Source: Chlorokybus atmophyticus (taxonomy: Eukaryota > Plantae > Mesostigma and Chlorokybus algae). From it: a stretch of 64,000 nt of DNA. Below the pieces are notes generated by a model, which saw nothing but the letters and a program-made list of their open reading frames with translations, was not told the origin of the DNA and ran no database searches. The DNA lies in the NCBI GenBank assembly GCA_009103225.1, contig RHPI01002823.1:783797-847796 (forward strand). The letters are read 5' to 3'. Below are positions 7,403 through 64,000 of the stretch, piece after piece; position 1 is the stretch's first letter; each line of letters starts with the position of its first letter. A program made the translations under genes and the position numbers.

Positions 7403-8578
7403 ATGGAAGAAAACTCGGTGCCCACCTCAAAAGGGGAGAGCTCAGAAAAAGAGCAACTTTCCCGTGAGGAGGAATTTCCATCCATGGAAGATATTCCGAA
7501 TCCGGATGATGCACCTGATGAGTCTCAAGCTGCTAAAGCTGCGGAAGCTTCAGTGGATGATAGATCACCTTCTATATTCCCTGAGTTTTCTATTCGCATG
7601 ACACAGCAGGACTTGATGGAGCATTTCCTTAGCACCTATGATCAGGACCCTCGTGAGGCAATTGTCTCATTCGTGAACTTTCTCTTCCTATTGGCAGAAA
7701 AAGTTTCAAAGCTCACCACCTTTATGGGGCGAGATTGGGAGGGGCAGATGGGTGAAGGCAAACGTGTTCTGAATATGATCGAGCGTCTGCAGCGTGCTGA
7801 CGGTGGTCCACCTGTTCAAGCACTTGCTCGTCCTGCCGAGTTTGTTCCCAACAAGCAAGCGGCCATCTTCGACTGGCTTGTGAAGTTGCGACACTATGTC
7901 AACTCCCTTCACATTTCTGAGGAGGGGAAATTGCGTGTAGCTGAGTTGCTGATCCCAAACGATGCTCTGGCAGAGTGGTACCGCCGTAAGCAACGGGATA
8001 CAAACCTCGGGCGGGAAGTAAATCAGTTGTGCTTTTTCATGGAGCAGCGCTATGGTGGCGCAGATTCTGCCCAGGTTGCTCGCAACCAGCTACACAACCT
8101 GCGTCAGAACGGGCGTCCGGTTCAGCAGTATATCCAGGATTTTCAGTCGTATGTCAGCAAGATCAATGCTGGCAAACTACCTATCAGTGATGCTGATCAG
8201 CTGGATATGTTCAGGCGTGGCTTGGACACAGATCTCGTGCAGCATGTGGCCGTCAACCCCGCGAGTTTGCAAGAGTGGGCCTCGACGGATTTACCAATGC
8301 TGATGCAGATGGTTGCTGCTGTGGACAGTGTAAAGCGCTCTCACGCCAACATGCAAACCACGGCAAAAGAGGCAGCCCCGGTTTCAGCTGCAAAGCGCCC
8401 GGCCACTGACAACAAACCTTTTGTGAAAAAGGCGAAACCATCTCATCCTGCTGGCCCCTACAATGCGGCCAAATCCATCATCACTTGCAGTTTCTGCAAG
8501 AAGACAGGTCATGGGGAGGCTACGTGCTATGCAAAACAGAATGCACAGAAGGCCAAGCAGCAGAGAGAAAAGAAATAG
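7403..8578 (+). CDS. gag: Retrotransposon Gag with CCHC zinc knuckle
   Basis: 391-aa intronless ORF with CSFCKKTGHGEATC (CX2CX4HX4C) near the C-terminus and a capsid-like LHNLRQNGRPVQQYIQDF segment. Confidence 0.88.
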   Translation: MEENSVPTSKGESSEKEQLSREEEFPSMEDIPNPDDAPDESQAAKAAEASVDDRSPSIFPEFSIRMTQQDLMEHFLSTYDQDPREAIVSFVNFLFLLAEKVSKLTTFMGRDWEGQMGEGKRVLNMIERLQRADGGPPVQALARPAEFVPNKQAAIFDWLVKLRHYVNSLHISEEGKLRVAELLIPNDALAEWYRRKQRDTNLGREVNQLCFFMEQRYGGADSAQVARNQLHNLRQNGRPVQQYIQDFQSYVSKINAGKLPISDADQLDMFRRGLDTDLVQHVAVNPASLQEWASTDLPMLMQMVAAVDSVKRSHANMQTTAKEAAPVSAAKRPATDNKPFVKKAKPSHPAGPYNAAKSIITCSFCKKTGHGEATCYAKQNAQKAKQQREKK

Positions 8579-11500
8579 GAATTGTCCGTGGTTGGTAGCT
8601 TAGTCGAGCAGAACGACTTTAAAAACTCTGTACTTCTTGATAAAGTTTCCTCTCTTTGCGATGTATCAGATGTATGGACTGATATGAGCACACCACCTGT
8701 GTTGAGAAATGCAAACGGTTGTGTTTTAATCAATGTTCCATTCTCTGAATTAGTAACTGCTGTTAAGCACTTACACGAGTTGCAATTACAACATGCTGTC
8801 ACTGCATGTGTAGTTATCCCTCGATATCATGGCCCGTGGTCGCGATTGTTGAAAGGGGGAGAAGTAATCATGCAACTCTCACGCAAAGATACAGGAGCTT
8901 CACCATTGCAAGTGATCTTTATCAAGTCTGCTACCAATCACGGCACTCCGACATTAGCTACATTTGATGGTCACTCAGTGCCACTCAAATGGAGATTTGA
9001 GAGTCAACTTATGGGTACACCATGTACAGCATTGATTGATACTGGTGCAAACCATAACTTTGTTGAACATGCTTGGGTGAAACGTAATAACATTCCTTTC
9101 ACACCAGTGAAGTCACGTCATATGTACGTGCTGCTGGTTCCACTCTCAATGCAATGGGAGAGGTAAAAGGGCGTTTTGTTACTAATGGCCATATAACCCG
9201 ACCAGCCTTCATCGTGGTGGATATTGGTATCCCCGGGGTGGATGTTGTTTTAGGGGAACAATGGCACACTGAAGCAGGTTTACAATTAGACTCTCGAGCC
9301 AATACGTGCACCCTTCGTAAAGGGAAACGTAGGATGACTTTAACAGCATCTGTACCCGCACGTATACCACGCGATAATGTTCCGCTCCTCTCTGCTATGC
9401 AATTGAAACGTTGCATGCGTAAACGTGAGGACGTATACTTACTGCACTTACGACAGGTGGAAACACCTGCTGAACAGGCTATCAGTGACCCTGTGGTGCA
9501 GTCACTTACGGAACAATACGCAGATGTATTTCAGGATGAACTCCCAGAGTTGCCTCCCGATCGAAAAAAACATACATCATACCATTCCGTTAGAGGAGGG
9601 GGCAAAGCCACCTTGGCGGCCTTTATACAGGCTAAGTCCCTTAGAACACGCGGAGATGGAAAAACAGCTCAAAGAGTTATTGGACAAAGGTTTAATAACA
9701 AAGAGCATATCTCCTTTTTGTGCACCAATTTTGTTTGTGCCCAAAAAGAATGGCAAGCTACGCATGTGTATTGATTACCGTGCGTTGAACAAGGTCACTG
9801 TGAAAAACAGATACCCTTTGCCTCGGATTGATGATTTGTTTGATAAGCTGTCAGGTGCAACAGTGTTCAGCACGCTGGATTTGACCAGTGGTTATCATCA
9901 AATCAAAATCCACCCGTCGGATATACAAAAAACTGCATTTCGCACCCCACTAGGACACTTTGAGTATAAAGTGTTACCATTTGGGTTAACAAATGCACCG
10001 GCTACATTTCAGACAGCAATGAACGCGGTATTTGCTGATGAATTGTACAAGTTTGTACTGGTATATCTAGACGACATTATTGTGTTCAGCAAAACCCGGG
10101 AGGACCAGCACAAACATGTGGAATTGGTTCTAGCTAGATTACGCGAACACAAATTCTATGCCAACCTGTCCAAATGCAACTTTGCAAAGGATGAACTAGC
10201 CTTTTTAGGGCATGTGATTGGCAAAGAAGGATTGAAACCAGATCCTCAAAAGGTGTGTGCGGTAAAGGATTGGCCACCACCCAAGGATGTACATCAGTTA
10301 CGTGCTTTCTTGGGGCTAGCCAATTATTTCCGCAAGTTCATGCGAGCATATTCTGGCATGGCAAACCCTTTAACATCTTTACTAAGAAAAGATGTTAAAT
10401 TTGTGTGGACGGAGGCACACGAGGTTGCTTTTACACGCATTAAAGATGCATTAACACAAGCCCCTGTGTTAGCCTTCCCCGACCACACCAAGCCTTTTGT
10501 GGTGATCAGTGATGCTTCCACCATTGGGTGTGGGGCAGTCCTTCTACAGGATGACAGACCATGTGCATATGAAAGCAGAAAGTTCATTCCTGCTGAACGT
10601 AATTACACAACCACTGAGCAGGAATTGCTCGGGGTGGTGCACGCGCTGCGCACATGGCGTTGCTACTTGGAAGGGGTGGAGTTTTCAGTGATTACTGATC
10701 ACAACCCGCTCACATTCTTTCATACGCAACAAAATCTGTCGAGGCGGCAAGCTAGGTGGAATGAATTCATTTCTCGTTTCACTTTCACTTGGCAATACCG
10801 TCCGGGTCGCACCAATGTGGCGGATCCACTAAGTCGCAGCCCTGCTCTTTTGGCACTTACGCGCTCTCGAAGTACGCGTAATGTACAACAGCCTGAAGAT
10901 CTTTTCTTAAAAGAAGTGTCCACAGGTTATAACTCAGATGATTGGTTTAGCAGTCAAACCAATCTGCAACAGCTTACCGCTGTTAGCAATCTGTGGTATA
11001 AAGGGGAGCAGTTGGCAATTCCCAACTCGGGCGACTTGCGTAAGCAATGCTTACTTTCAGTGCATGACCCGCCGTATGGTGGGCATTTGGGGAAACACAA
11101 AACACTCAAATCTGCGCAACAGTTATACTGGTGGCCGTCAATGTCAGCTGACGTGGATCAATATGTTCGCACATGTGACGTGTGTCAACGTAATAAGCCA
11201 CTACGACAAAAACAAGCGGGATTGCTTAAACCATTGGCAATTCCAGAACAAAAGTGGGATAGTGTCAGTATGGATTTGATTACTGACCTACCTGAAACAG
11301 CAGCTAAATACACTGCTATTGTGGTTTTTGTCGACCGTTTGACTAAAATGGTGCATTTTGCCCCGTGTTGCACAACTGTAAGTGCACGGGACTTGGCACA
11401 CTTATTTGTGTCCACGGTCTTTCGCGTTCATGGTATACCGCGTGAACTTGTCACAGATCGTGATCCTCGTTTTGTCTCCAAGTTTTGGCGAGAAGTCTGT

Positions 11501-12316
11501 GAATTGTTGGGGGTAAAACAAAGCATGTCGACTGCTTTCCACCCGCAAACGGACGGTCAAACTGAGCGAGCAAATCAAATACTGGAAGAAATGCTTCGCC
11601 ACTATGTGGCTCCTAATCATGCTGATTGGGACAGGTACTTGCCAATGGCAGAGTTCGCTGTGAACAACGCGTGGCAGGAAAGTGTAAAGGAAACCCCATT
11701 TTTAAATTATGGGATTCGCCCAAACACACCAGCGTCATTGCGTGTACCTCGCAATGCCCTGACTGTACCAGTGGCAAAGGAATTTGCCACTGATATGCAA
11801 GAAAATTTGGCTCGAGCCAAGCTGTGTCTGTCAGAAGCACAGGACAGGCAAAAAGCTTATGCTGATACACATCGAAAAATGGCCACTTTCGATGTCGGCG
11901 ATAAAGTTTTGCTTAATGCAAAAAACATAACCATCAAAGGTACGGGTGCTCGCAAGTTGCTGCCCCGATGGTTAGGTCCTTTCTCTATCACTGATAGAGT
12001 TGGTACGCACGCTTATCGACTGCAATTGCCCCCAAGTGTGCGTATACACAACGTGTTTCATGTAAACTTGTTGAAACCTTACCGCTCAGACGGTAGAACA
12101 CAGCCTCCACCACCGCCAGTTGAGGTGGACAGCGAGCTCGAATACGAGGTGGAAGCTATATTGAACCATAAGCTAAATGGTCGAGGACGCGCAACTCGCT
12201 ATTTGGTGAAATGGAAAGGGTATGGCCCGGAACATAACAGTTGGGAGCCCGACAGGCATCTTACGCACTGCCGCGAGTTGCTTCGAGCTTATTGGGATTC
12301 ATGTCCTGTCCCATAA
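8579..12316 (+). pseudogene. pol: Pol polyprotein (methyltransferase-like segment, protease, RT, RNase H, integrase, chromodomain) with two compensating frameshifts
   Basis: Protease ALIDTGAN; RT YLDD; RNase H SDAS...ELL...TDH; integrase H-X6-H/CX2C, SMDLITDLP, VTDRDPRF, QTDGQTERANQ and WLGPF; chromodomain YEVEAIL...YLVKWKGYGPEHNSWEP. The frame shifts -1 near 9120 and +1 at the A7 run 9564-9570. Confidence 0.92.
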
Positions 12317-20556: not shown

Positions 20557-22805
20557 TTACGCCAGTCTGGTCGGGTTGGTGCACGTGAAGCGGATGCTTC
20601 CACTAGGCGAGTTGGTGGCGCGAATGACATCCCCGTATCCGATGCCGTTGACTACAGCGGGTCCCTGTTCACAACAATATGAAGAGCATGAGTCGGAGGC
20701 ACCCCACATTACTCAATACGCCACACAACTGACACACATGCATGTGGTTGTGTGTGCTCACCGTCACGTAGCCGTAGTGATCGTAGTCCGACTGCGCATA
20801 CATCGGGACAGATCCGTCCGTTGGCGTTTCGAGCACGCAGTGCGCACATGTGGAGCTGTCCAACAGGGTCGTCTCCGGCTGTGCATCAGCACAACACATT
20901 TGACACGCACGCCAACATGCATGTTGGGCCTCACTCGATGAGTATCAATCATCGGCACAACTCACCTCGAACAGGGCAGTTGGGCCCTTCTTGATTACAG
21001 TGAAAGAGACCATATAGTATGTGTCTCTGTCGAGGGCGTCAACGGCCTTCACCTGGAACGCGTGCGGCTTGGCTGTGGCCGTCAGCTTCACGGGACTCTT
21101 GCACCGAGTCCTGTGTGATGTTACATCTCAAGTCAATTCACTCATGCATGTTGTGCGTGTACGTGTGCGTGTTAACATACCACTCGTTGGTGGTGCCGTC
21201 CAGAGACATGCCGTCGTATTTGCAGTACTGCTTGCACTCGCTGGCGTCCTCGCAGGTCCACGCCAACGTCACCTGCATGGTGATGACATGCTGAGTGACT
21301 CGCACACACACACACACACACGCACATCCACAGACATGCGCACGCTTGCACCCACCATGGGCACACATGTACAACATGCCAGTTACCTCCTCATTGTTGC
21401 TCAAGGCGGGAGGCACGGCGTCGAACGTGATGACGGGGGCTTCCGTATCTGTCATCACACACGCACACGTTACCAACCATCACCACATGGATTGGTACTT
21501 CAGCAGTTTCAACACACGCATCCTTTTGGCATTTGTTCTCACCGTAGATGAACACGTGCATGGGTGGTTCTTCCTCGGGCGGGATGCCCACGTCATTGCT
21601 TGCAGCCAACCACGTGCGCGTGCGCACAGCGTAGGAACCCTCCGGCTTGGCGGTCAGGTCGTGATACTGGAACAACGCGGTGAACGAGGTGGCGTTCTGC
21701 GCGGGGGAGACAACATGTGGGTGAGAAGTTGTATCTGTCGTGGGCACGTGTGGGTGGGTGGGTGTGGGTGTGGGTGAGGGCGTGCGTGCGCGTGTGTATA
21801 TGCGTGTGCGCATGCGCATGCGTGTGCTCATGCGTGCGTGCGTGTGCGTGTGCGTGTGCCTATGCATCTGCTGTTGCCAACCAAGTATGCTTGCGTGTAA
21901 CAGCACTGCACCCCATTCTCACCGTGTCGTCGCGGCAGCACTGCTCGTCGCAGTTGTTCCAGTTGCTCCATGTGCCCGTGAAGTTGTTCTGGCACTGGAA
22001 ATCGATCTCCCACTGAGCATTATTTATTGAGTCGTCGGGCTTGTTGACTGCATCACAAGAGAGAAATCAGCTCACACATCCACACACACACACACACACA
22101 CAGAGAGAGTCAAAGTGCTTGCCTGAGAGACGGAACTCAGGTTGGTTGTCGCTTGTAACGTGTTGTGGCTCGACAAATGCCGTCTTGATTGTTGTGTCCT
22201 TGTCGACGATGAAGTCAAACTCTCTCCTCCCACCCGGCGTGTCATCCGCCGCCTTGTACACCACGAACTCCACCACGTACGCGCCCTAAAAGTGAGTGAG
22301 CAAGTGAGTGAGTTGGGTGAGAGTGAGAGTGAGACAGAAGAGAGAGCGTGAGCGAGAAGATCCATGAGGGAAGGAGATGCTTACGTTGGCGAGGTCAGAA
22401 AGGGTGAAGAGCGAGGTGACACTGTTGGCCATGTAAGTGTCCGTGCCGTAGCGGCTGCGGAGCAGCAAAGATAGATAGATATAAGTTACGCGCATGGAAG
22501 CTAAACTGGACGTTCAAATGTGCATAGAACACGTGGACGTGGACGTGGACGCAGCGAGCGACGCAGCGAGCGAGCGAGCAAGAGCGAGAGAGAGCGAGAG
22601 CGAGAGCGAGAGCGCGAGCGCGAGCGCGAGCGCGCGAGCGCGAGAGAGAGAGCGAGAGAGAGCGAGAGAGAGCGAGAGAGCGAGAGAGCGAGAGAGAGCG
22701 AGAGAGAGCGAGAGAGAGAGCGAGAGAGAGAGCGAGAGCGAGAGCGAGAGCGAGAGCGAGAGCGAGAGAGAGCGAGAGAGAGCGAGAGCGAGAGCGAGAG
22801 AGAGC

Positions 22806-22838
<33 letters not shown>

Positions 22839-22904
22839 CGAGAGAGCGAGAGAGAGAGAGCGAGAGAGAGAGCGAGAGCGAGAGCGAGAGCGAGAGCGAG
22901 AGAG

Positions 22905-22992
<88 letters not shown>

Positions 22993-23475
22993 GACTCACA
23001 CTTGAGGCGAGTTGTTGATGCTGTACTTGATGTACCATTCCATGCCACCAGTGCCATACAGAGCGAAAGTCACACTCTGCAGTCAATCAATGAAACAATC
23101 AATCAGACAGCAGTTGTTGTCTTGCCCTGGGATCATCACAACCCAATACTTTCCTCGGCAGCAGTACACCAACTTTGTGCATTACCCAACATGATCACAA
23201 AGATTGAGTGTCTTACGTTCTGCAAGATGTAGTATGGGTCGCCGTCATCCAAGTAACTGGGCACCATCGCAGCATTACCGACATAAACGCACAGTCCTGA
23301 GAGAGGGTCAAACAAGTGTCTCAAGATGGATGGTACCAGCACACATATGCAGCAAACACAATGCAAGCTCTAAGCTCTAATACTCTGCTTGAAACACACC
23401 GTTCTGGCAGTGACTCGCCAAGGCACGTCCGATGCCGAGCAGCAGCACGACTGCTACAAGGAGGGCCTTCATCAT
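20557..23475 (-). CDS. Secreted protein with Ig-like/beta-sandwich segments, multi-exon
   Basis: GCCATG context and signal peptide MMKALLVAVVLLLGIGRALASH. Exons splice in frame: GLCVYVGNAAM..., SVTFALYGTGG..., GAYVVEFVVYK...FIVDKDTT, DTEAPVITFDAVPPALSNNEE|VTLAWTCEDASECKQYCKYDG, HAFQVKAVDALD. The 3' end (TAA 20557-20559) is uncertain. Confidence 0.7.
22551..22990. repeat. Compound (GA)n/(GCGA)n microsatellite, about 440 bp, in an intron of the Ig-like gene
   Basis: Directly visible and pure (GA)n at its right end. It accounts for the SL/ER low-complexity ORFs in the track. Confidence 0.97.
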
Positions 23476-52868: not shown

Positions 52869-53975
52869 TCTTTATGCACCTCTTGGAAACAGACAGCTGT
52901 GCGTGACCATTATTTGCTTGTAAATTGTTCGGTAATTTCATGTTGTATATATGTAATATATTGCTGCATTCATGCGTCTCACACTATGCCAATCATGCGC
53001 AGTCTCAAACATACAACCACACACCCATGGCAAACTTTATTCACAAGAGGGCCTGGCAAACGGCCTCACGCAACTAGCTAAATGCCAACCATGACGACAA
53101 CAGCAATTGCCATGACAAAACACAGTCAGGAAGACCGATTGGCAAGACCGGCTGGCTGTAACTGCGGGCAGGGCATGTATGCTATTGGCGGGGTTATTTC
53201 TTAGGTACAAAGTCTTATACATCACGAGCACACGCAAGGTGGAAGGGGGCTGTATCTTAAGCTTAAACTCTGTAACGACATTACCAACATTTTACATGGC
53301 TGAGTACTTATTATCACATTTGTATCTGCAACACTCTGTTAACAATAAAAAACCAGAAATGAAAGTTCAATAGCAATGTACTACTATGGTAAATGAAACA
53401 ACGTGCGAGTATTGCAGTATTGTACTATTAGCATTATGACCCATGCACTACAACAAGCCCTATCCAGAGTGCATAGTCTTGACCTATGCAGATTGCATCT
53501 TGCACTTTTAAGCTTTATGCAAAATATGTAAGAACTGGCCCATGCATGGTTCCCGGAAGGCCACAGTCAGACCTTGCCCACTTCTGCAAGGTTCTAATGT
53601 GGAGCGCTTGTCTTGCTGCTGCCAATGCTTGCCTAGGCGTGGTGCTGTTGGGCCCTCGCAACATGCCACTGTGACTTGCTGCTGCTATGCTTGCTTGCTG
53701 CCTTGATGCCACTAACAACTAACGGACACTGTGAGTTCAACTGTGCAGCAAACTCTACCACTGCTAGCTTGCGTTGTTGTATGTGATGATGTGATGTGTT
53801 GTTGTTGTACTGGTAGCTAGTGTCCCATTAGTGTTGTTGCATATGACAAGACCTATACCACCTTTAGCCGCACATCACTGCGAAAGCCACCAGCAAGTGC
53901 TGCACAGATCCATGCTATGTTGGCATCCCCTATCCACAACCGCTAACTGACGCGCTGGACACAAAGCATTCCCTC

Positions 53976-56811
53976 TCACTCATCACTTGGAAAGAAGTTG
54001 CCCAGAAACTCTCCCCAACCGCCTCCCCCTTCATCATCCCCGCCATCGCCCATGTCATCGCCGTCATCGCTATCGCGATCATCAGGCCTCTCGTAGTCAT
54101 CGCCTCGCCATTCATCGCCCCATGCACCGCCAGAGGGATTCCCAAAGCCATACCCGCCGGCATCAGGGTTATCACCACCACTAGGGCCAGGAGCACCCTC
54201 AGGACTTGACCCAGGTTGCCCTGCGCCAACATCTGCTGCTGCACCTGCTCCTGCTGCTGCACCTGCTGCTCCTGCGCCTGCTTCTGCGCCGGTTTCACCC
54301 TCAGGCCTGGCTTCGCCTCCGCCGAGGGGGATGGGTATAGGCATGAAGCCGCCGTGCATGCCGGAATGCCGTGAAAAGAAGTCATAGTCCACCTGTCAAG
54401 ATAACCATAGCCTCTTACTACATGGGCTTGGAACTCCACATGTGCACAACTTGAGTGTCCACATGTGTCAGGTGCGTATGTGCACATGTGCCCTGACCCT
54501 TGTCAGCATACTCAACCGGAGGGTCCCGTACAGACACAATATGCACATAACAACATACCGTGATGGCTGCTGCCAGAATCAAGGAGCGCTCAGCCAGGGT
54601 GGTAGCGCGAGCCTGCATGAGTTGGGTTGCACCTGTTGCCGATGTTACCACTGCGCCCTCGGATGTTGTGGATGCGTCATTCACAGTGGAAGCAGCTGCA
54701 GATGCGCTGGTTACAGCTGGCCTTGCCTCGCTCTTGCGTAACTCGGCTTCCTGATGAATGCCCATTGTGACGACATATGTCAGCGCGGCTAACTAACTAG
54801 TGAGAACCTTTAAGCAGAGTTAGCTCAGTCCATTGCCTTACCGGTTCATGCACAAGCCTGCCTTCCTCGCCTGTGCTAGCAACTCTGTCGCCGAGATGAA
54901 CAACATAGCAGCCTGCATCTGTGAACAGCTCCCGACCAAAGTTGGACCAGTTTCTGCGTTAAACAATGAGTTACTACGAGCGCAGTGCTCATTAGCAGCA
55001 ACAGGAACACCAGTCTTCATACCTATTGATGACAGCAAGCGGCTGGCCATGCTGATCTTGCACTTCAAACTCCCATGTTAAAAACCCGCCATCTATCGAG
55101 CCGAACTGCTGCTTGTTGAAGTACATATCGTATTTTCTTCGGATAGGATGCCAGCGCTGCATAATCTCTCCCACAACGGTACCTTGCGGATCTTCAACAT
55201 ACATGCGACTGTTGATGAGCTTGACTGGCCTTCGCACTCGGAAAATGACGTTGCCTGTGGCATCCATCACCGTTGATGTGAAGGGCCTGTAAGCGACCAA
55301 CAACATGAGCAAGAGATACAGGATCAACGGGTCTTCAGCATGGCATGCATCCTGTGCATGCAATGCTGAAGAACCTTGCAGCCTTGCAACATGGTGTGAG
55401 CCTCACCTGCGACGTGCGAGCAGCTGACGTCCTACGGCTGTGGCTATGGACCCTTGCTCCTCGGCAATGAGCCCTACAACCTGTCCGGTCTCATCGCAGA
55501 TAGTGTATCTGGTCGCGTGCTCAAACCCAAGAACAACATTGCCCCACTCCACACCACGCGTCACAACAAGCGCAGGTCTGGCCACAATTGTTGCTAATGC
55601 CGCCTGCAAACCATGAGATGCTTAGGCTTTCAGCGAGCATGCACAGTAAACACTAAAGCTCATTGGTTCAATAGAATCACTTGCAATTGAACTACATGTT
55701 GCACTTGCCTCCTGCTCAGTTGCAGTTTCAACAGGTAGGGGTGGAGGGGGTGCAGTGGCAGGCAGATGCGAGAGGGCTGTGTTTAGTGTTGGACTTGATG
55801 GGTCGGAAGTCGCGGGCGTTGGTGTTGAGGCAGCACTGCTCGGCGCAGCATCCCTTGCCCTTGCAGCCCCAGCCTGCCTGCGCGCTGCAGCAATCCTCTT
55901 TCGCCTCTCTGCTGACGACAACAATCGCCTGCGGATAGCTGCTTGTTCCTGCACGCTTACCAAAACATGTAAACAACACTGCCGTCACGGCACGCACGAG
56001 CATGCATGCGCATACACATGCAACCACGCGTGTATGTGTGCACGTTTACACAGCGAGAGCGCGCACAGAGTGTATAACCTTGCTGAGCACTTTTTTCGAA
56101 AACACAATAACTTGCAGGACTGTATGCATCAACTATCCATGATCTGTTTCTACACACAGAGACACAAACGCTCACCTCTTCGCTCAACGCTGCTGAAGCG
56201 AATGTGCGACACGAAGTGGAAGCCGTGTTGCTGTCGTGCAGTGCATGCCAGGAGAAGTTGCCGTCTGCATAGTGACTGCTGCAGGCGGCAGCCGCGCGTG
56301 CAAGCTGATCTGTGCTGTGTTTGCTCTGACGAGCTGAACCTTCATATCGCTGCCGTCAAGTAGTGGAGGTCAGTCATGCAGAACAATGGCATATAGCATC
56401 CAATGACAATCAAAACAAATTGTTCACTGTTGAGGCTGTACAGGCAGAAAGAACAACATATGGCTGTCCGATTTTTGTTCATGAGCCTCAAACAAGAAGC
56501 GTGTAGGGCTTTCTGGCGTAAAATAGCTCTTTGATGGGTTTTCTTTCTGTGCTAGTAAAGTACAAGTAACGCGTGTCTTGTTACACTGCAATCAATGAAG
56601 GTGGGTTGTTTGAGAAGTTGAATGATGTTTAAAATGGAATACGTGATGAAATGACTAATCACAAGACAACGCCACAAGCATATCTGTCTTACTAGTAGTA
56701 ATAAGTCACCATGCACCAAGAATCCTCTCTGTTAGCCTTTGGACAACCACACCAGCAACAGCTGCGAACCTGAAGCAACCTTAAATGCCTGCGCAGCGCC
56801 CTCCACGCCAT
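53976..56811 (-). CDS. Phospholipid scramblase family protein, probably mitochondrial (Aim25-like)
   Basis: Presequence-like MAWRALRRHLRLLQ...RTFASAA; RPALVVTRGVEWGNVVLGFEHATRY, VRRPVKLINS, QRWHPIRRKYDMY, GGFLTWEFEV, INR|NWSNFGRELFTDAG, ERSLILAAAIT|VDYDFFSRHS and an acidic Gly-rich tail. Confidence 0.88.
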
Positions 56812-56823
56812 CCCCCCCCCGCC

Positions 56824-56909
56824 NNNNNNNNNNNNNNNNNNNNNNNNNNNNNNNNNNNNNNNNNNNNNNNNNNNNNNNNNNNNNNNNNNNNNNNNNNNNN
56901 NNNNNNNNN
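56824..56909. other. Assembly gap (86 N) flanked by C runs
   Basis: Directly visible. Confidence 0.99.
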
Positions 56910-57687
56910 GCCCGCCCCCCCCCTCCTCCGGCGCCGGAGACACCGCTGACGCCCTCGCCGCCAACCACACGCACGACGCCAGCAACAAAGTCCCAATTTC
57001 AGCGTCACGCATTGACATCACTGCGTGGTGCATGACGCACATCAAGTGACGAGTGACGGTCACGTAAGAGCGATGCGGATAAGCTTTTATTATTAAAGCT
57101 AACTGGAAGATGTCGTTGATATCCAGACCTATTGTCAATATCCGCTGAATTGTTGCAGACATCAATAATATTCGTATCTCAGCAGGTAAAAAACACGCTA
57201 ATGACGTAACGGAAGCGTGTTTCGGTACGTATCGCAAGCGTGTTCCGAATTTGCAGCTGAGCGCGCAGCCAGCTGGCACTTACTCTCTGCGGCATTCTGG
57301 GCGGATTGTCGCCCGCCGTCGCCGCCGCCGCCGACGACGACGACTGCGGCAGGGAAGAAGGTGAGGAGGTCGTCTGTCATTCATCAAGCCATGGTGATCA
57401 AATCATTCACGGCGCATTGCTGGCTTACGTCGCTTGCTGCCGCATTACTTCGCTTGCTTGCTGTCCCGCTGCTTGAGGCGGCTTCATGCTTGAGGTTCAA
57501 TCGCAGGCAGCAGATTTAGCTAGCAAGCATTGCTGTGCTGTGCGTGTTGCTCTCACCTTTTTGCTTGCTGGCTCGTCTAGCTGTCCTGTCGACAGGCGTG
57601 CATTGCCTGCTGTGCTTTAAGCTTCAAACATGTCGCCTAGGAGCTGTTGTTGGCATGGTGCTGCAGGTGTTTCTGTCGTGAAGCAAC

Positions 57688-60600
57688 ATGGCGGCGACGG
57701 CGTGGGCGACGGGTGTTTATGTGAGGCACCAATGGGAGAGACCTTCCAAGCAGCTGGGAGGGGGTGCAGGAGTGAGGAACAGCTCCGCTGCGTCTTGCGG
57801 CGTTGCGCAAGCGTTGTCGCAGCGGGAAGACCGCCGCGTGGCCGAGTACAAGCGCAGCTACTACGAGAGCCTCACGCGATCCGCGCTGACAGCAAGCAAG
57901 CAGCCCTCCCTTCAATGGTGTGACTACCAGAGTCCCCGCATTTACAGGTGAGCTCACCTATAATCTCCTTGGTAAATACACCCACTCACCCCCGCGTGCC
58001 TCCCCGCCAAACTGTAATACACATGCGCTATGTGTGCGCAGCAATGTGCATGCAGCTGCCCCCGCCGCCAGCATCCGTTCGAGTTGCAAATGAAACTTAC
58101 CCACACATAAGCCGCACGCACCAGTTTTTGGTCATTCAAGCTTATAGCAACGCATGCGTTAGAATATATGAAGCTTGGGTAGTTGATATGCTTGGCCGAT
58201 TCAGCTGTGTCTCAAGCTACCTCGCTTGGTGTGACTGGCAGCTGACAGGCAGCTGGTACTGGCATCGGGCAAGCGTGCGTGTAAGGCAGCATGTGGAACA
58301 GTTGTGGCAACAAGTCAGCCCACACTGAGGATCGTACTACACCACACACCACTAGATTGGGTATATACGTCGCTAACCACAAAGGAAGCACGCAAGACAG
58401 CCTTTTGCATTTGTTACTGCATTTGTTAATTGCATGCAACTATATTGCAGTTCACCACGTGACTACCAACTGAGTTCAATTTTGAGCACGGTGCGTCCCT
58501 ATGGACTGGGCAGCAACCAGCCCATTGCGTAAGTGACATTTGTTGCTCAGTCATATAAAGAAGTGGTGGAGCGGTGGTCAACGCTTCATCACATTACCTA
58601 ACACAGTTAACTTCGGTAGTTGCTTAACACCTTGACATTTTACAGGCGAGATCAAGCAAACCGCACCGGCCTCATCTTGGTTGCACGCGCAGCAACTGGT
58701 GAGGCAGACACGGATGTGGACAACAAGATGGACTTGGCGCGCGCTGAGATGCGCGAATGGTGAGTGCCTTGCACAATTGTTGTCTTTAATTGCACACTCA
58801 CAATGTACATCTGTTTGTTTCACAACTATGTTGGGACCTGGTTGGTCAATCGCTCATGTTGGGGGTGGAGGTTCTGCTGCTGGGTTACAAGTTCTGCTCG
58901 TGTTTGCATGCCCAAATGAAACGTATATCATCGAGCACAGCAACTTGAACGCATTCCAGTACCAGTTATTGTCGTCAACCTTCTAGGCCTGAAGGGCAGT
59001 CAACACCGCGTTGACTGCAGCTTGTCATGTTGACCACACTGTCAAGACCTCAATACAGCCATGTCCATGTGAATGGCGGGCCTGCTTGTTTGTTGAGGTT
59101 TTCTTTGAGAGAGCATGGTGCATGTAGGCAGCCTGCACAAACGATATGCACATATGGTCTGCAGTGTTCAAGGAGCGGGGGATGTACCTGTTTCCTTGTA
59201 CTGAACACAATGACGCAAGTAACCCAATGGCCCATGCAGTCGAATTGCCGATGGCGCCGATCAGAGCATGTTGTATGGCAGAGTCAGCTGCATGTTGTTC
59301 TTTTTGTTGTCTGCTGTGTTTATTTGATGTGATGTTTTGTTGCCACAAAAAGCATCTAGTGGTACATGCACAGCACTGCTTTGCTTGCTGCATGTGTCAA
59401 GCATGACTCATCTTTGTGTATTGACACTGGACAGGTGGGCGCAGCAGCAAGCCAAGAAGGCTGCTTCTTCATCCAGCGCCAGCAGGCAAGCACTGGTCAA
59501 CTCTGGTTCTGTGTGTGCATGCAATTGCGATGCAGAGGAACAACATCAGTGACACTTTCTCAGCGTGGATACCGCAAGCACCAACGGGACGGCGCAGGCT
59601 GTGACCGGTGAGGCAGATGCGGACGTTATCAAGAAGATGGATCAAGCACGGGCTGAGATGCGCGAATGGTGAGTGCGTTGATGTGTGTGTCGTGGATGCA
59701 GATACAGTTGCTGCACACATAAAGTAGGACTTCCACTTGCTTAACCTCTTGAGCGGGCCTGGTTGCAAGCTCGGCTGATAGCTGCATGAGCAGACAATAA
59801 ACTTGTAGCGCATCCGTTCATCAGGTTGGTGTTACAGCCTTATACTACCTGATGAATGAGTAAACTCCAGATGAGTAGCGGCCGCATAGGCCCGATGCCG
59901 TGGCAATGCAAAGACAGCTGCGATATAATGTGTACCAGCTGCGTGTGGATGTTGCACAACGCATGTTTCATGTTCACAAGCAGCCCCGGGCTAAATAAGC
60001 ACCACAGTACACGACTATTACGGTCATCACTGCTGGTGACATCTATGAAGTACGGGTTGTTGAGCTGTCTATGCCGTTGCTGGACAGGTGGTCGCAGCAG
60101 CAGGCGAGTAAGGCTGCTTCCGCATCCACCGCACAGCCCATTGCGTAAGTGACTTGCCATGCCATGCCATGCCTGCTCATTGCGAGCCAGCAGGCTAACA
60201 CTAGTCACAATCCTGCTTGGCTGTGCACTCGCATGCGCTTGTGTGACTTACTTGTTTCAATATTAAAGCATAACATTTTCCATGCTGTCTCAGGGTGGAC
60301 AATGCAGAAATAACGGGTGAAAACGAGGAGGCAGATGCGGAGGTTATCAAGAAGATGGACCAAGCGCGTGCTGAGATGCGCGAATGGTGAGTGCCTTGAA
60401 GTATTTGTCGTGCATGCAGTTACCCCTTGCAAGATGATTTGGACTGCGTACTCGCTCAGTCTCTGTTATGGCCTGGGTACCACATGGCCGACAGCTGCAT
60501 GAGCAAACATAAAACATTGTACAGACATGTTTGCAAACTCATAAACAAGCAGACTCAGTAGTAGTTGCCGCATAGGCCGAAGCTGATGTTAGACTTTTAT

Positions 60601-63600
60601 ATTTCGGTATCAGTCAGGTAGCATGCATTCTCATCGCTACACAGGTGACAGTGATGATCGCATCCTGCAGTCCCGTTGTGATACAACTTGTGGACAAGTA
60701 CCAAGTGCTGGAAGCTCATTCTTGTTTGTTGCTGGACAGGTGGTCGCAGCAGCAGGCGAAGAAGGCTGCTTCTGCATCCAGCGCACAGCCCAGCACGTAA
60801 GTGACTTGTGCCGCTTGTGTCCATTATGTGGGCGGGCACTCCACCACTGGTCAAGTCTGCATGGCTGCGTGGCTGCATGCGCATACCACAACATGGGCCC
60901 ATCCTGTTGTTGGAATTATTACATGCAATGCATAAAATCTGCAATGCTCCAGGGTGGTCAATGCAGACACAAATGGCGCAAGCGAGGTACTGGCGGCAGA
61001 CGCTGCAACCAGCGAGGCAGATGCGGACGTTATCAAGAAGATGGACCAAGCGCGTGCTGAGATGCGCGAATGGTAAGTGCCCTGCATGCGGATGCATTCA
61101 ATGTTATACAGCACATGACGTGCAAACTGTCATGGCTCGGTTATGAGCATTGCTGGTTATATATGAAATCACTGAGCACAGTACCACACCCAAATCAACA
61201 GTTAGTGCATTTGAATGATGAACAGCTGCATACGCTCACTGGGTTGCTCACGACCAGCCGTTAATGTGATGTACTTGGTCACGACATCACTCAACACGAT
61301 GTGTATGGGTCTGCTGCGTGTGTGACATGTCCGTGCATTGGCATAATGAAACCAGGTAGTTTTTTGGTGTAGCCTGCTATGTGCAATGCATTGACGGCCC
61401 TGGTTGGGTTGGATTACACCAAACTGTGCCCATGTAATGTGAGTCAGTCACTTAGGCCCTTGCAGAGGTGCAGGGATATGTCTGATGCCTTGCACAGCAA
61501 TGCTCAGCGACAGCTTGCACTCAAGAACTTGTAGTGGGGCGTTCGTGCACATGATCAGGTTTGTAGTTGTGTGCACAAACATATCAATTGACAGGTGGAT
61601 GCAGCAGCAGGCGAACAAGACCGCCAGCAAACCTCAAGCAGTATCAAGCACACAGCTTGATGGGTAAGCGACATGCTAAGCTCATGCCTTGTCATCAGGC
61701 ATTCAACTGGGGGTTGACTGGGCATGACTCTCTCTACTCTCTCTTCCTCCTACCTGTATGCACGTCACACATGCATAGTTGCACAACGTCCCCGGCATCT
61801 TTATAGGGTGGACAATACAAAGATTAACGGCGCCTCGGACATTCTGAAAAGCGCTGCGACCGACGAGACCGATCCTGCAGTCATTAAGAAGATGGACAAG
61901 GCTCGTGCTGAGATGCGCGAATGGTGAGTGGCTTGCAATACATCTGTGTTGGGAATGCATCCACTGAAGGACAGCAGCCACTTGGAAGCAGGCGCCTGGT
62001 TGCTTTGCGGGAGTCATGCACCAATCTTGTCACAGTTGAACGAGCTGTATGCATCAATGTGTGCATCAATTCCGCTTGGCATGACAAACACGCTAGGCCT
62101 CTGTCATCGATAAGGCTTGTGGAGCCACACGCTACGTCGTTGTCAGTTCAACTTCAATCACTGGTTGAGAGGCGCTGTACGTGTATGACACCTCTCAGCC
62201 AGTGATGTCCAGATGCATGCAGATTCTTCCTGCTTCCCAAATTGCATGTTCCGGAGTGTAGCGCAAGTCCGTGAAGCCTCCATAGGTTGTTGTAGTCAGT
62301 GTGAGTCAGTGCATCTGGTTGCAAGTGCAAAGCGTAAAGCGCTGGACATGGTCTAACATTTGCTGGCCTTGCTCGGGGAAGGTGATGGTTGTTCTGTGAG
62401 TTGAGCCTGCCATGAAGCTTGTCATGCATAACGCTGTTTATGACTATCAAGTTGCATCAGACCTCTGTCCCCTATTGGACCCACCTCCGCCATTTCTGTG
62501 CGGGATGGTAACGTTAAGTCTGGTCTCTGGACAGGTGGATGATGCAGCAGGCGAAGAAAGCAGCCTCTGCTCCCAGCGCAAGCAAACCCAAGGCGCCTTC
62601 TCTGGACACTGTGGTTGCATCCGTCAAGTCTGCCGTGCAGGCTGCGAGCGAGAAGATATCGGAAGTCGTGAAGCCACCTTCAGCTGTGGAACAGCTGATT
62701 GAAGAGGAGGTAGTATCCTCGGGACCATCATATTATTCCACATGGCGTGCGGGTCAGGAGTGCATCGTTGCCTCGGGCCTTGTGCTAATGACTTGTGATC
62801 CTCCCAATAGGTTAGGGCGGCTATGCGGAGATATGCGGAGCAGAAGGTAGAAAGGGAGAGGATTGAAATGATGGAGATGGACAAGGCACGCGCAGAGATG
62901 CGACAGTGGTATGCACAAGGGTTGCAACTTGCCACTTTGTCTTGACGTGTTGGCATTATTAGGACATACCTTTGCTGTTCTTATTAGTATATGACTTGAA
63001 CGTGTGAAAACTGCAGGTGGGCTGAGAATCTTGCGGCCAGGCGGGCTCTGCGAGGATCCGTGTTCGGGTGGTGTCTCATCCCACGTGCTTATGAGGTGTC
63101 CCAGACAATGCATGGTCGTTCTGCATGTGCCCATGCATCCTTAGGGAATGTATAGCTCTGCAACAAACAGACTGTCCCATTTGTGGTGTGGTGTAATGTT
63201 GTGAGGCATCTATCGCAGTCGTAGCGTACACCACTGACCTTTGGGTTGGATTGACCATGTGATAGGTACGTGCGGAAGATCGTCCCGCTAATGCGCCGAT
63301 CATCCAAATCAAAGGGGCTGACTTCATCATCGGCGCTGCACCAACACTGGAGAAGGGCGAAGACGGATCCGCTGTCATTGATACTCCGAAGGTGTCCTCA
63401 AGGCACGCACGCATCATAGCAACAGATGTTGTTAAGCGCGGGGGTGAAATCGAGCGTGAGTTCTCCTTGGTGGACCTCAACAGCACAAACGGCACATGGA
63501 TCAACAGGTATGTCACCCTGTTCAACAATGGTTGTGCAGCAGTCTCAATATCACTTGTGCGTCCCCGGTTAACTGAACTTGCTTCATTCAACCTGCTCTA

Positions 63601-63942
63601 TAAACCCATCACAACTCCACTCTGGCACCTGGAATTGCATCCTCAACATGTAGCAATTCCGTACAACTAGCAGTGCGCTTCTCGCAACCGAAATCAATAT
63701 GACATGAAAATTGTCAAGGCAACATATATGTGAAATACGTGTAACTTCGGTGATGAGGTGTCTAGGGTGCATTGTGACAGTTGTCAAGCCGAGATTGCAT
63801 GCACTCATGCCGTAGCAACTCACAGTGATATTTGTTGAAGCGGTGCAGCGCTGAATGTTGTGAACATACACGCAGGTCGCGACTCCGACCAGGCGCAGCA
63901 GTAAAGTTGAGACCTGGGGATGTCATCATATTCGGGGACCAG
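57688..63942 (+). CDS. Protein with six repeated helices and a C-terminal FHA domain resembling the zeaxanthin epoxidase C-terminal module; continues past the window; N-terminus tentative
   Basis: Repeat exons at 58646-58759, 59564-59668, 60294-60386, 60953-61072, 61807-61923 and 62811-62908 each end in MD(L/Q/K)ARAEMR(E/Q)W. FHA exons at 63266-63507 and 63876-63942 read FIIG...VSSRHARI...LVDLNSTNGTWINR|SRLRPG...LRPGDVIIFGDQ. Confidence 0.85.
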
Positions 63943-64000
63943 GTACATTGTTTGTTCCTGCTGGCCGCTTTTGGTGAGCACGTGGTATTATGTGATGGTG

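Follow-up and report, generated by a model that had tools for sequence, protein, structure and literature searches.

A helix-array FHA protein of Chlorokybus atmophyticus belongs to an apparently undescribed streptophyte family and probably carries a paralogue of the zeaxanthin epoxidase tail

A transcribed gene for six helices and an FHA domain

We analyzed a stretch of 64,000 nucleotides (nt) from the alga Chlorokybus atmophyticus (GenBank assembly GCA_009103225.1, contig RHPI01002823.1, positions 783,797 to 847,796 of the forward strand; this whole stretch is "the window", and all coordinates are positions in it) that contains a gene for an unusual protein: six copies of a short helix, set on Ala/Ser/Thr-rich spacers, followed by an FHA domain. 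A preliminary description, made from the letters alone, had placed the gene at 58646-63942 and viewed it as a relative of zeaxanthin epoxidase (ZEP) that lacks the catalytic domain and amplified one helix. We find that this helix-array FHA gene is real and expressed; judged by its sequence, it represents Chlorokybus in an old and as yet unnamed family of streptophytes, so the lineage-specific construction that the preliminary description implied is contradicted.

The RNA evidence consists of contigs from four public runs that were compared with 58400-64000; three of the four are spliced and therefore represent RNA (two studies). As deduced from the spliced contigs and their GT/GC..AG sites, the gene has 15 exons within the window (57688-63942, + strand) and one last exon past the window end, that is, the transcript runs at least 255 nt beyond 63942 (an RNA loose end). 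The gene starts with the ATG at 57688, three codons after an in-frame stop at 57679, and the RNA joins the exon that ends at 57947 directly to the exon that starts at 58646 (A1); the contig spans 257 nt upstream of this joint, and its last 30 letters equal 57911-57940. Thus, the start proposed earlier, 58646, is an exact exon start, but the gene begins at 57688 and ends past 63942. The spliced frame is open across the 15 exons and gives a product of approximately 582 amino acids (aa), in which the final 14 residues (SDERCKYVVRRQAS) come from the database protein for this gene, P0001 (EukProt Chlorokybus atmophyticus P003590, JGI Chlat1 4231). The exons, in which A and B denote the first and second halves of a helix and F denotes the FHA domain, are as follows (X1-X3, RNA runs; a slash marks an exon border):

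57688-57947, + strand: first coding exon, ATG and basic Ser/Thr/Ala-rich leader (aa 1-86), a probable transit peptide; open reading frame, RNA contig, same start in P0001
58646-58759, + strand: exon A1, leader end LILVARAA, acidic stretch, first half of helix 1 (MDLARAEMREW); joint 58759/59435 GT..AG in X1-X3, acceptor ttttacag/G
59435-59485, + strand: exon B1, second half of helix 1 (WAQQQAKKAA) and Ser-rich spacer; joints in X1-X3
59564-59668, + strand: exon A2, spacer and first half of helix 2; loose end GTCGCAGCAG after 59671
60088-60144, + strand: exon B2, second half of helix 2 and spacer; loose end TGCGCGAAT before 60087, joint 60144/60294 GT..AG
60294-60386, + strand: exon A3, spacer and first half of helix 3; RNA joint, splice sites
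60740-60796, + strand: exon B3, second half of helix 3 and spacer; loose end before 60739, joint 60796/60953
60953-61072, + strand: exon A4, spacer and first half of helix 4; RNA joint, splice sites
61595-61663, + strand: exon B4, second half of helix 4 and spacer; an A-exon end joined to 61594, joint 61663/61807
61807-61923, + strand: exon A5, spacer and first half of helix 5; joint 61923/62535 in X2
62535-62709, + strand: exon B5, second half of helix 5 and long spacer (aa 349-406); RNA joints
62811-62908, + strand: exon A6, Arg/Glu-rich helix and first half of helix 6 (MDKARAEMRQW); joints 62709/62811 and 62908/63017
63017-63095, + strand: exon B6, second half of helix 6 and first FHA strand (WAENLAARRALRGSVFGWCLIPRAYE); RNA joints
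63266-63507, + strand: exon F1, FHA core with IIGAAP replacing the canonical GR, SSRHA, and DLNSTNGT; Pfam FHA, fold match
63876-63942, + strand: exon F2, last FHA strands (SRLRPGAAVKLRPGDVIIFGDQ); joint 63507/63876, gene goes on past the window

The joints present in RNA are A1-B1, B1-A2, B2-A3, B3-A4, B4-A5, A5-B5, B5-A6, A6-B6, B6-F1, and F1-F2; all are GT..AG except one, the intron after exon B1 (59486-59563), which is GC..AG, and the remaining A-to-B joints are fitted by loose ends. A joint from 60385 to 61594 was considered as exon skipping and rejected: its short side is 19-25 nt and is identical in A3 and A4, so it is merely the A4-B4 joint.

These data correct the public gene model, which missed the GC-AG intron and includes a spurious exon. 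P0001 (591 aa) omits exon B1 and with it the second half of helix 1; it carries an extra 27-aa exon near 58440-58520 that the main spliced contigs skip and that is covered by one low-depth, unspliced-looking contig only. The contigs of X1 and X3 differ from the window by single bases at 58686, 59608, 61013, 61024-61025, 63047, 63436, and 63451; run X2 equals the window exactly, and the differences are probably strain-related.

Anatomy of the protein and its repeat

The six repeat peptides, ARAEMR(E/Q)W, are located on the + strand at 58737, 59646, 60364, 61050, 61901, and 62886; each ends at a TG/GT donor and the next exon, hundreds of bases on, opens after cag/G TGG, and the spliced repeat reads ...EMREWW.QQQAKKAA. 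The six helices of the preliminary description are thus confirmed by the peptides, the splice sites, and the RNA contigs. Its other readings in this region were borne out as well: the helices start at aa 115, 167, 217, 276, 338, and 429, that is, with periods of 52, 50, 59, 62, and 91 aa (about 50-62 aa had been given for the first five helices); the last copy reads MDKARAEMRQWWAENLAARRALRGSVFGWCLIP; the LVARAA noted before repeat 1 is there, as LILVARAA; and an FHA domain follows the helices, because Pfam FHA (PF00498) matches the 80-aa exon 63266-63505 alone with an E-value of 1.2e-8 (35.7 bits vs a cut-off of 20.7).

The protein as a whole has an isoelectric point (pI) of 8.4 and is divided into unlike parts. 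Residues 1-105 are a basic leader (pI 10.1) that ends in LILVARAA; residues 106-405 are an acidic array (pI 4.8) of five helices with Ala/Ser/Thr-rich spacers; and residues 406-465 form a helix that is rich in Arg and Glu and continues into the sixth copy, with the FHA domain from aa 466. Pfam has no match in the leader, helix, or spacer pieces. An AlphaFold2 model of the tail contains one long helix, a weak linker, and the FHA sandwich (predicted local distance difference test score, pLDDT, 66; core 70-87); the full-length model, made without an alignment (pLDDT 46), predicts a helix for each repeat at low confidence and is too poor for helix packing.

All of the repeat exons have phase 2/2 and lengths that are multiples of 3 nt. 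They are 64-88% identical to one another, and the introns between them are approximately 40-55% identical, near background; the copies are therefore old and under selection, and neither recent nor a chance repeat. Tandem Repeats Finder reported no repeats on the DNA because the introns have diverged.

A family of helix-array FHA proteins in streptophytes

With the FHA exon as the query, HMMER was run exhaustively on 1.84 billion representatives and yields 33 matches: P0001 itself, a Coleochaete scutata protein (P0006), two fern proteins (P0009 and P0018), and otherwise essentially only generic FHA domains, most of them bacterial. A word-based search for the array adds proteins of 486-595 aa from Closterium (five strains) and Netrium digitus. 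The same family, defined by the leader, the helix motif, the charged helix, the pre-FHA helix, and an FHA domain without the canonical Arg, comprises Coleochaete scutata EP00245_P006471, Netrium digitus EP00270_P008799/8800, Closterium CLOM_g7354 and relatives, and the fern 'FHA domain-containing proteins' Adiantum GOP47_0006053 and Ceratopteris KP509_14G055000; PF00498 is precomputed on P0001 and all of these kin. The matches listed for a profile search that started from a fern protein are all from ferns or are bacterial FHAs. As a possible orthologue we considered At2g21530, a plastid FHA protein of Arabidopsis, and dropped it, as no seed-plant protein appears in any search.

The number of helices per protein, counted by pattern, differs widely:

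Chlorokybus: 6 helices, period 50-62 aa
Coleochaete: 5 helices, period about 35 aa
Netrium: 8-9 helices, period 27-42 aa
Closterium: 8-10 helices, period mostly 20 aa
Fern paralogue A: 1 helix, no period
Fern paralogue B: 0 helices, no period

The consensus over 43 units from 8 proteins is [ML][DE]xxRx[EA]MRxWW..Q...K. In these units, M8, R9, W11, and W12 are invariant, although the counting pattern fixed W11/W12 and constrained M8/R9 loosely, so their invariance is partly built in; R5 is found in 42/43, an acidic residue (D/E2) in 43/43, and K19 in 39/43. The last copy, adjacent to the FHA domain, is its own subtype, (M/L/N)D(K/R)xRxxMRxWW...W..K.R..GW, in every lineage but Chlorokybus.

When the Closterium and Adiantum genes are mapped, every helix is split inside the first Trp codon (TG/GT...AG/G TGG), exactly as in Chlorokybus. 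This conserved phase-2 intron (W^W) shows that the copies arose by duplication of exon units that it bounds, and its sharing means that the intron is older than the split of Chlorokybus from the other streptophytes. The Chlorokybus gene differs from its kin by a second intron in each spacer and by the loss of an intron before VSxxHA. Copy number also varies at short range: two Netrium transcript isoforms (P0082 vs P0088) have 8 vs 9 helices, and related Closterium strains (P0081, P0083-P0086) have 8-10, so the array is still changing by whole units. The introns of the orthologues are very long (the Adiantum gene for a 219-aa protein spans about 35 kb, locus L003, and the Closterium gene about 23.6 kb, L001), and not all of the annotated first exons were recovered with tblastn.

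The hydrophobic moment of the helix is low (0.05-0.30), and on this basis we rejected a membrane-binding amphipathic helix; together with the invariant charged positions, the low moment argues for protein recognition instead. One form of recognition would be self-assembly, in which the helices pair in a coiled-coil-like manner or bind the FHA domains of other molecules and thereby form a homotypic network. The conserved apolar positions (1, 4, 8, 11, 15, and 18) do fit the 3-4 spacing of heptads, the tandem of helix and FHA resembles KIF1A CC1-FHA (which is among the fold matches), and the hornwort protein RbcS-STAR condenses via coiled coils (literature); however, Gln and Ala occur within the hydrophobic stripe, which is narrow, and we consider a self-assembling scaffold unlikely.

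The FHA domain and its probable relation to the ZEP tail

By Foldseek, the model of the tail matches 3vpy, 7dvq_X, 2jkd, and 2pie with E-values of 1e-5 to 4e-7; the nearest solved structures are DDL (3vpy), SNIP1, Pml1, and kanadaptin. Like the family, these have the FHA fold with an insert between the SxxHA strand and DLGSTNGT (profile matches of 40-43 bits); unlike the family, they are nuclear proteins without a repeated helix, and their alignments stop short of the strand-3 region in which the family lost its Arg. A sequence search of the PDB found generic FHA domains only, and feature and fold searches of the ESM Atlas found generic FHA clusters only, with no cluster that combines FAD and FHA domains.

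In canonical FHA domains, phosphothreonine is contacted by the Arg of GR, the Ser and His of SxxH, and the Asn of NG. We aligned the FHA domains of the family with six canonical bacterial FHAs from the searches. The Arg column of GR is A, S, or L in every family member, SxxH is kept throughout, and NG is kept except in Closterium (TG); the family also has approximately 6 extra residues in the loop between strands beta3 and beta4 and ten more after the SxxHA strand. By its fold the domain belongs to the FHA family, but it lacks the canonical phosphate-binding Arg, and phosphate binding may be altered.

Real ZEP genes were obtained for comparison by applying a degenerate DNA pattern for WFEDDDALE to metagenome contigs (36 loci). 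Two of these (L006 and L014; Ga0041059_1002716 and AR_comb_assmDRAFT_11806339) are the Arabidopsis thaliana ZEP (ABA1) gene, with tail exons as in the known protein, and the Arabidopsis ZEP string given in the preliminary description matches their DNA exactly; another (L025:384-884:-) is the tail of a grass ZEP cDNA. ZEP genes from grasses and dicots account for about 30 further metagenome loci; DNA and RNA of plant hosts are common in metagenome collections, which can be used as a source of plant genes.

Several features connect the ZEP tail and the Chlorokybus tail. In both, a helix, a W.L strand, and the FHA domain are colinear: BLASTP aligns the grass ZEP tail over 155 aa (54 bits, 28% identity), from the helix (DKA...) to the last FHA strand, and hhalign gives ZEP vs the family a probability of 97%. 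The Arg of GR is missing from both (G-S in ZEP, G-A in Chlorokybus), and the beta3-beta4 loop is equally long, that is, the distance from this Gly to the His of SxxH is 23 residues in ZEP and 23-24 in the family vs 17 in canonical FHAs. Introns compared between ZEP and the family also coincide. A phase-2 intron in the codon after GT[WYF].[TN] is found in Arabidopsis ZEP, grass ZEP, Adiantum, Closterium, and Chlorokybus; a phase-0 intron directly before (V/I)SxxHA is found in Arabidopsis and grass ZEP, Adiantum, and Closterium, and is absent in Chlorokybus; and a third intron near FG is offset by two residues between ZEP and the family. With about five introns and approximately 390 possible sites, we estimate the chance of two exact matches at well under 1%. 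Grouping of the FHA domain with ZEP, as the preliminary description expected, depended on the rows included: in a maximum-likelihood tree from which four very long rows were removed, the family and ZEP split from 61 other FHAs with a Shimodaira-Hasegawa-like approximate likelihood ratio (SH-aLRT) of 91.5, which is not decisive; the tree with these rows is weighed below.

On the strength of these comparisons, we regard paralogy between the FHA module and the FHA tail of ZEP as probable. ZEP and the family differ in other respects: ZEP has an FAD monooxygenase domain and the Chlorokybus protein does not; the family has a 10-residue insert after SxxHA and ZEP has a 5-residue insert after GTW; and ZEP has HG where the family keeps NG. 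The preliminary description was right that the gene is free of FAD exons. The first coding exon (57688-57947), with which the transcript starts, lies behind an in-frame stop, Pfam found only FHA in the pieces of the gene, and the upstream neighbor, on the minus strand, is a scramblase-family gene (53930-55963; PF03803, E 2e-15, one exon). This neighbor is arranged head to head with the FHA gene, and their shared intergenic region contains 86 N at 56824-56909.

The helix is another matter. One helix was indeed amplified, as had been proposed, but its identity with the ZEP helix was not upheld. The Arabidopsis ZEP string scores 2.7 bits against a profile of the pre-FHA helix, a score equaled or exceeded by 109 of 2000 shuffles; the scores of ten real ZEP helix peptides against the profile of the 43 units range from -3.7 to 0.1 bits, and 130-810 of 1000 shuffles reach them. 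The ZEP helix lacks the family core residues R5, M8, R9, and WW, and it is a separate exon with the borders DK^A...GE^W and no W^W intron. By its position, the amplified helix may correspond to the helix of ZEP; the similarity of the helices themselves is at the level of shuffles.

A relationship to the ZEP tail suggests that the protein could act on ZEP, as a regulator or decoy that shares a thylakoid or stromal partner of the tail and, by competing with ZEP or clustering it, tunes the xanthophyll cycle. In addition to the paralogy, the two modules have the same non-canonical phosphate site, and a 2025 review calls the function of the ZEP FHA domain unclear and suspects it to be regulatory (PMC12570779). 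Paralogues that split more than 500 million years ago need not share a ligand, however, and the 10-residue insert of the family is missing in ZEP, in which NG has become HG; moreover, the family is absent from most of the land plants that have ZEP, and the repeated helix is not conserved in ZEP. We judge a role as ZEP regulator or decoy to be rather unlikely.

Probable plastid location

The leaders in all five lineages are basic, rich in Ser, Thr, and Ala, and nearly free of acidic residues, and a (V/I)x(A/C) site at their end precedes the acidic start of the mature protein (read by eye from the sequences). Plastid transit peptides have this appearance, and from the composition of the leaders we consider a plastid location probable. 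Alternatively, the protein might act in the nucleus or cytosol, as an FHA adaptor of the DDL/SNIP1 type in which the repeat is incidental; an insert located between HA and DLGS, which the family shares with the closest solved FHA domains (DDL, SNIP1, kanadaptin, and Pml1), points in this direction. This location is at odds with the transit-peptide-like leaders of all five lineages and with the introns and loop features that are shared with plastid ZEP, and the ranking of structures is biased because the PDB contains no ZEP; a non-plastid adaptor has a low probability in our view.

A proposed function and the evidence against it

Our favored explanation, to which we assign a probability of about 0.6, is that the protein is a multivalent plastid adaptor of an old streptophyte family, with an FHA domain that is likely a paralogue of the ZEP tail. 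The probable transit peptide would bring the protein to the plastid, where it would dock through its FHA domain to one partner, possibly that of the ZEP tail, in a manner that is perhaps weakly dependent on phosphorylation or independent of it. The repeated helices would each bind one copy of a second partner, or one another, so that the number of helices would set the valency.

Several observations weigh against this explanation. For the link to ZEP, no protein search recovered a ZEP, including the 33 matches of the exhaustive HMMER search; the first tree, in which the long rows were kept, has an unresolved backbone and places ZEP among bacterial FHAs; the HMMER per-domain scores of ZEP against the family, at 25-30 bits, do not exceed those of either against bacterial FHAs; and the intron comparison covered eukaryotic FHA genes of ZEP and the family only. 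For the plastid, the closest solved FHA domains are those of nuclear splicing and microRNA factors (DDL, SNIP1, and Pml1), and the Chlorokybus leader is long (approximately 105 aa) and contains several acidic residues. For the array, the AlphaFold2 models are of modest confidence, with a pLDDT of 66 in the tail model and 46 in that of the full-length protein, and the helices of Closterium, one every 20 aa, could form a folded helical repeat instead of stickers on spacers. For the family as a whole, the database searches did not find it in seed plants, mosses, Klebsormidium, Mesostigma, or chlorophytes; in databases, its members are labeled hypothetical or 'FHA domain-containing'.

The array also invites comparison with the pyrenoid, in which the helices would cross-link Rubisco as do those of EPYC1 and CsLinker and the FHA domain would couple the linker to phosphorylation. 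Like these linkers, the Chlorokybus protein has several short helices on low-complexity spacers with a period of about 50-60 aa and is probably a plastid protein in a pyrenoid-bearing alga. The five array helices, at 50-62 aa, fit the sticker numbers and the approximately 50-aa spacing of EPYC1 and CsLinker (PMC13655443), and the periods of 52, 50, 59, and 62 aa fall within the range of 20-120 aa that the FLIPPer pipeline accepts (PMC11570498). All of the multi-helix forms are from the pyrenoid-bearing Chlorokybophyceae, Coleochaetophyceae, and Zygnematophyceae (PMC9614468), and the ferns carry one helix or none; this correlation, however, is based on four lineages of algae and a single one of land plants, and phylogeny confounds it. 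Phosphorylation is known to regulate EPYC1 (literature), and no Rubisco linker of a streptophyte alga is named in the review that we searched.

The differences from the known linkers are substantial. The helix motif is unrelated to those of EPYC1 and CsLinker, and the protein is conserved far beyond one genus; the EPYC1-type motif is absent from the array, as the preliminary description had noted. With an attached, folded FHA domain and a long charged helix, the protein is not largely disordered. Known Rubisco linkers are strongly basic; the Chlorokybus array is acidic, with its pI of 4.8. The FLIPPer pipeline includes a pI filter (PMC11570498). The period falls to approximately 20 aa in Closterium and to 27-42 aa in Netrium and Coleochaete, the unit of helix plus FHA persists in ferns, which have no pyrenoid, and the family, undetected in Klebsormidium or Mesostigma, seems to be absent from other pyrenoid-bearing streptophytes. 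We consider a role as Rubisco linker or pyrenoid scaffold very unlikely.

In a broader version, also very unlikely, the array would supply the valency of a condensate or scaffold in the pyrenoid-bearing plastids of streptophyte algae and would be anchored or read out via the ZEP-type, Arg-less FHA domain; with the loss of the pyrenoid in land plants, the helices would have been reduced to one or none. One form of this condensate reading may be a Rubisco linker, or a tether from the linker to the membrane.

Other features of the window

Two further features of the window lie at a distance from the FHA gene:

7403-12316, + strand: Ty3/gypsy-type long terminal repeat retrotransposon, with an intact-looking gag open reading frame (391 aa) and a pol open reading frame (963 aa) for reverse transcriptase, RNase H, integrase, and chromodomain
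22395-23086: long purine/pyrimidine simple repeat that reads as (SL)n or (RE)n in several frames; low-complexity, not a gene

Implications

In the literature that we searched, neither the helix-array family nor its motif, conserved intron, or link to the ZEP tail is described. The Chlorokybus gene therefore introduces a conserved and apparently undescribed family that extends from the earliest-branching streptophyte algae to ferns and whose motif is a sharply conserved 12-residue helix in 0 to 10 copies. Given that its multi-copy forms are all in pyrenoid-bearing classes, the family also provides a cheap linker candidate, although the evidence is weak. The comparison with ZEP is the first in which computational tools connect a stand-alone protein to the ZEP FHA tail; a small, soluble paralogue of this tail would be an easier handle for finding the tail's binding partner.

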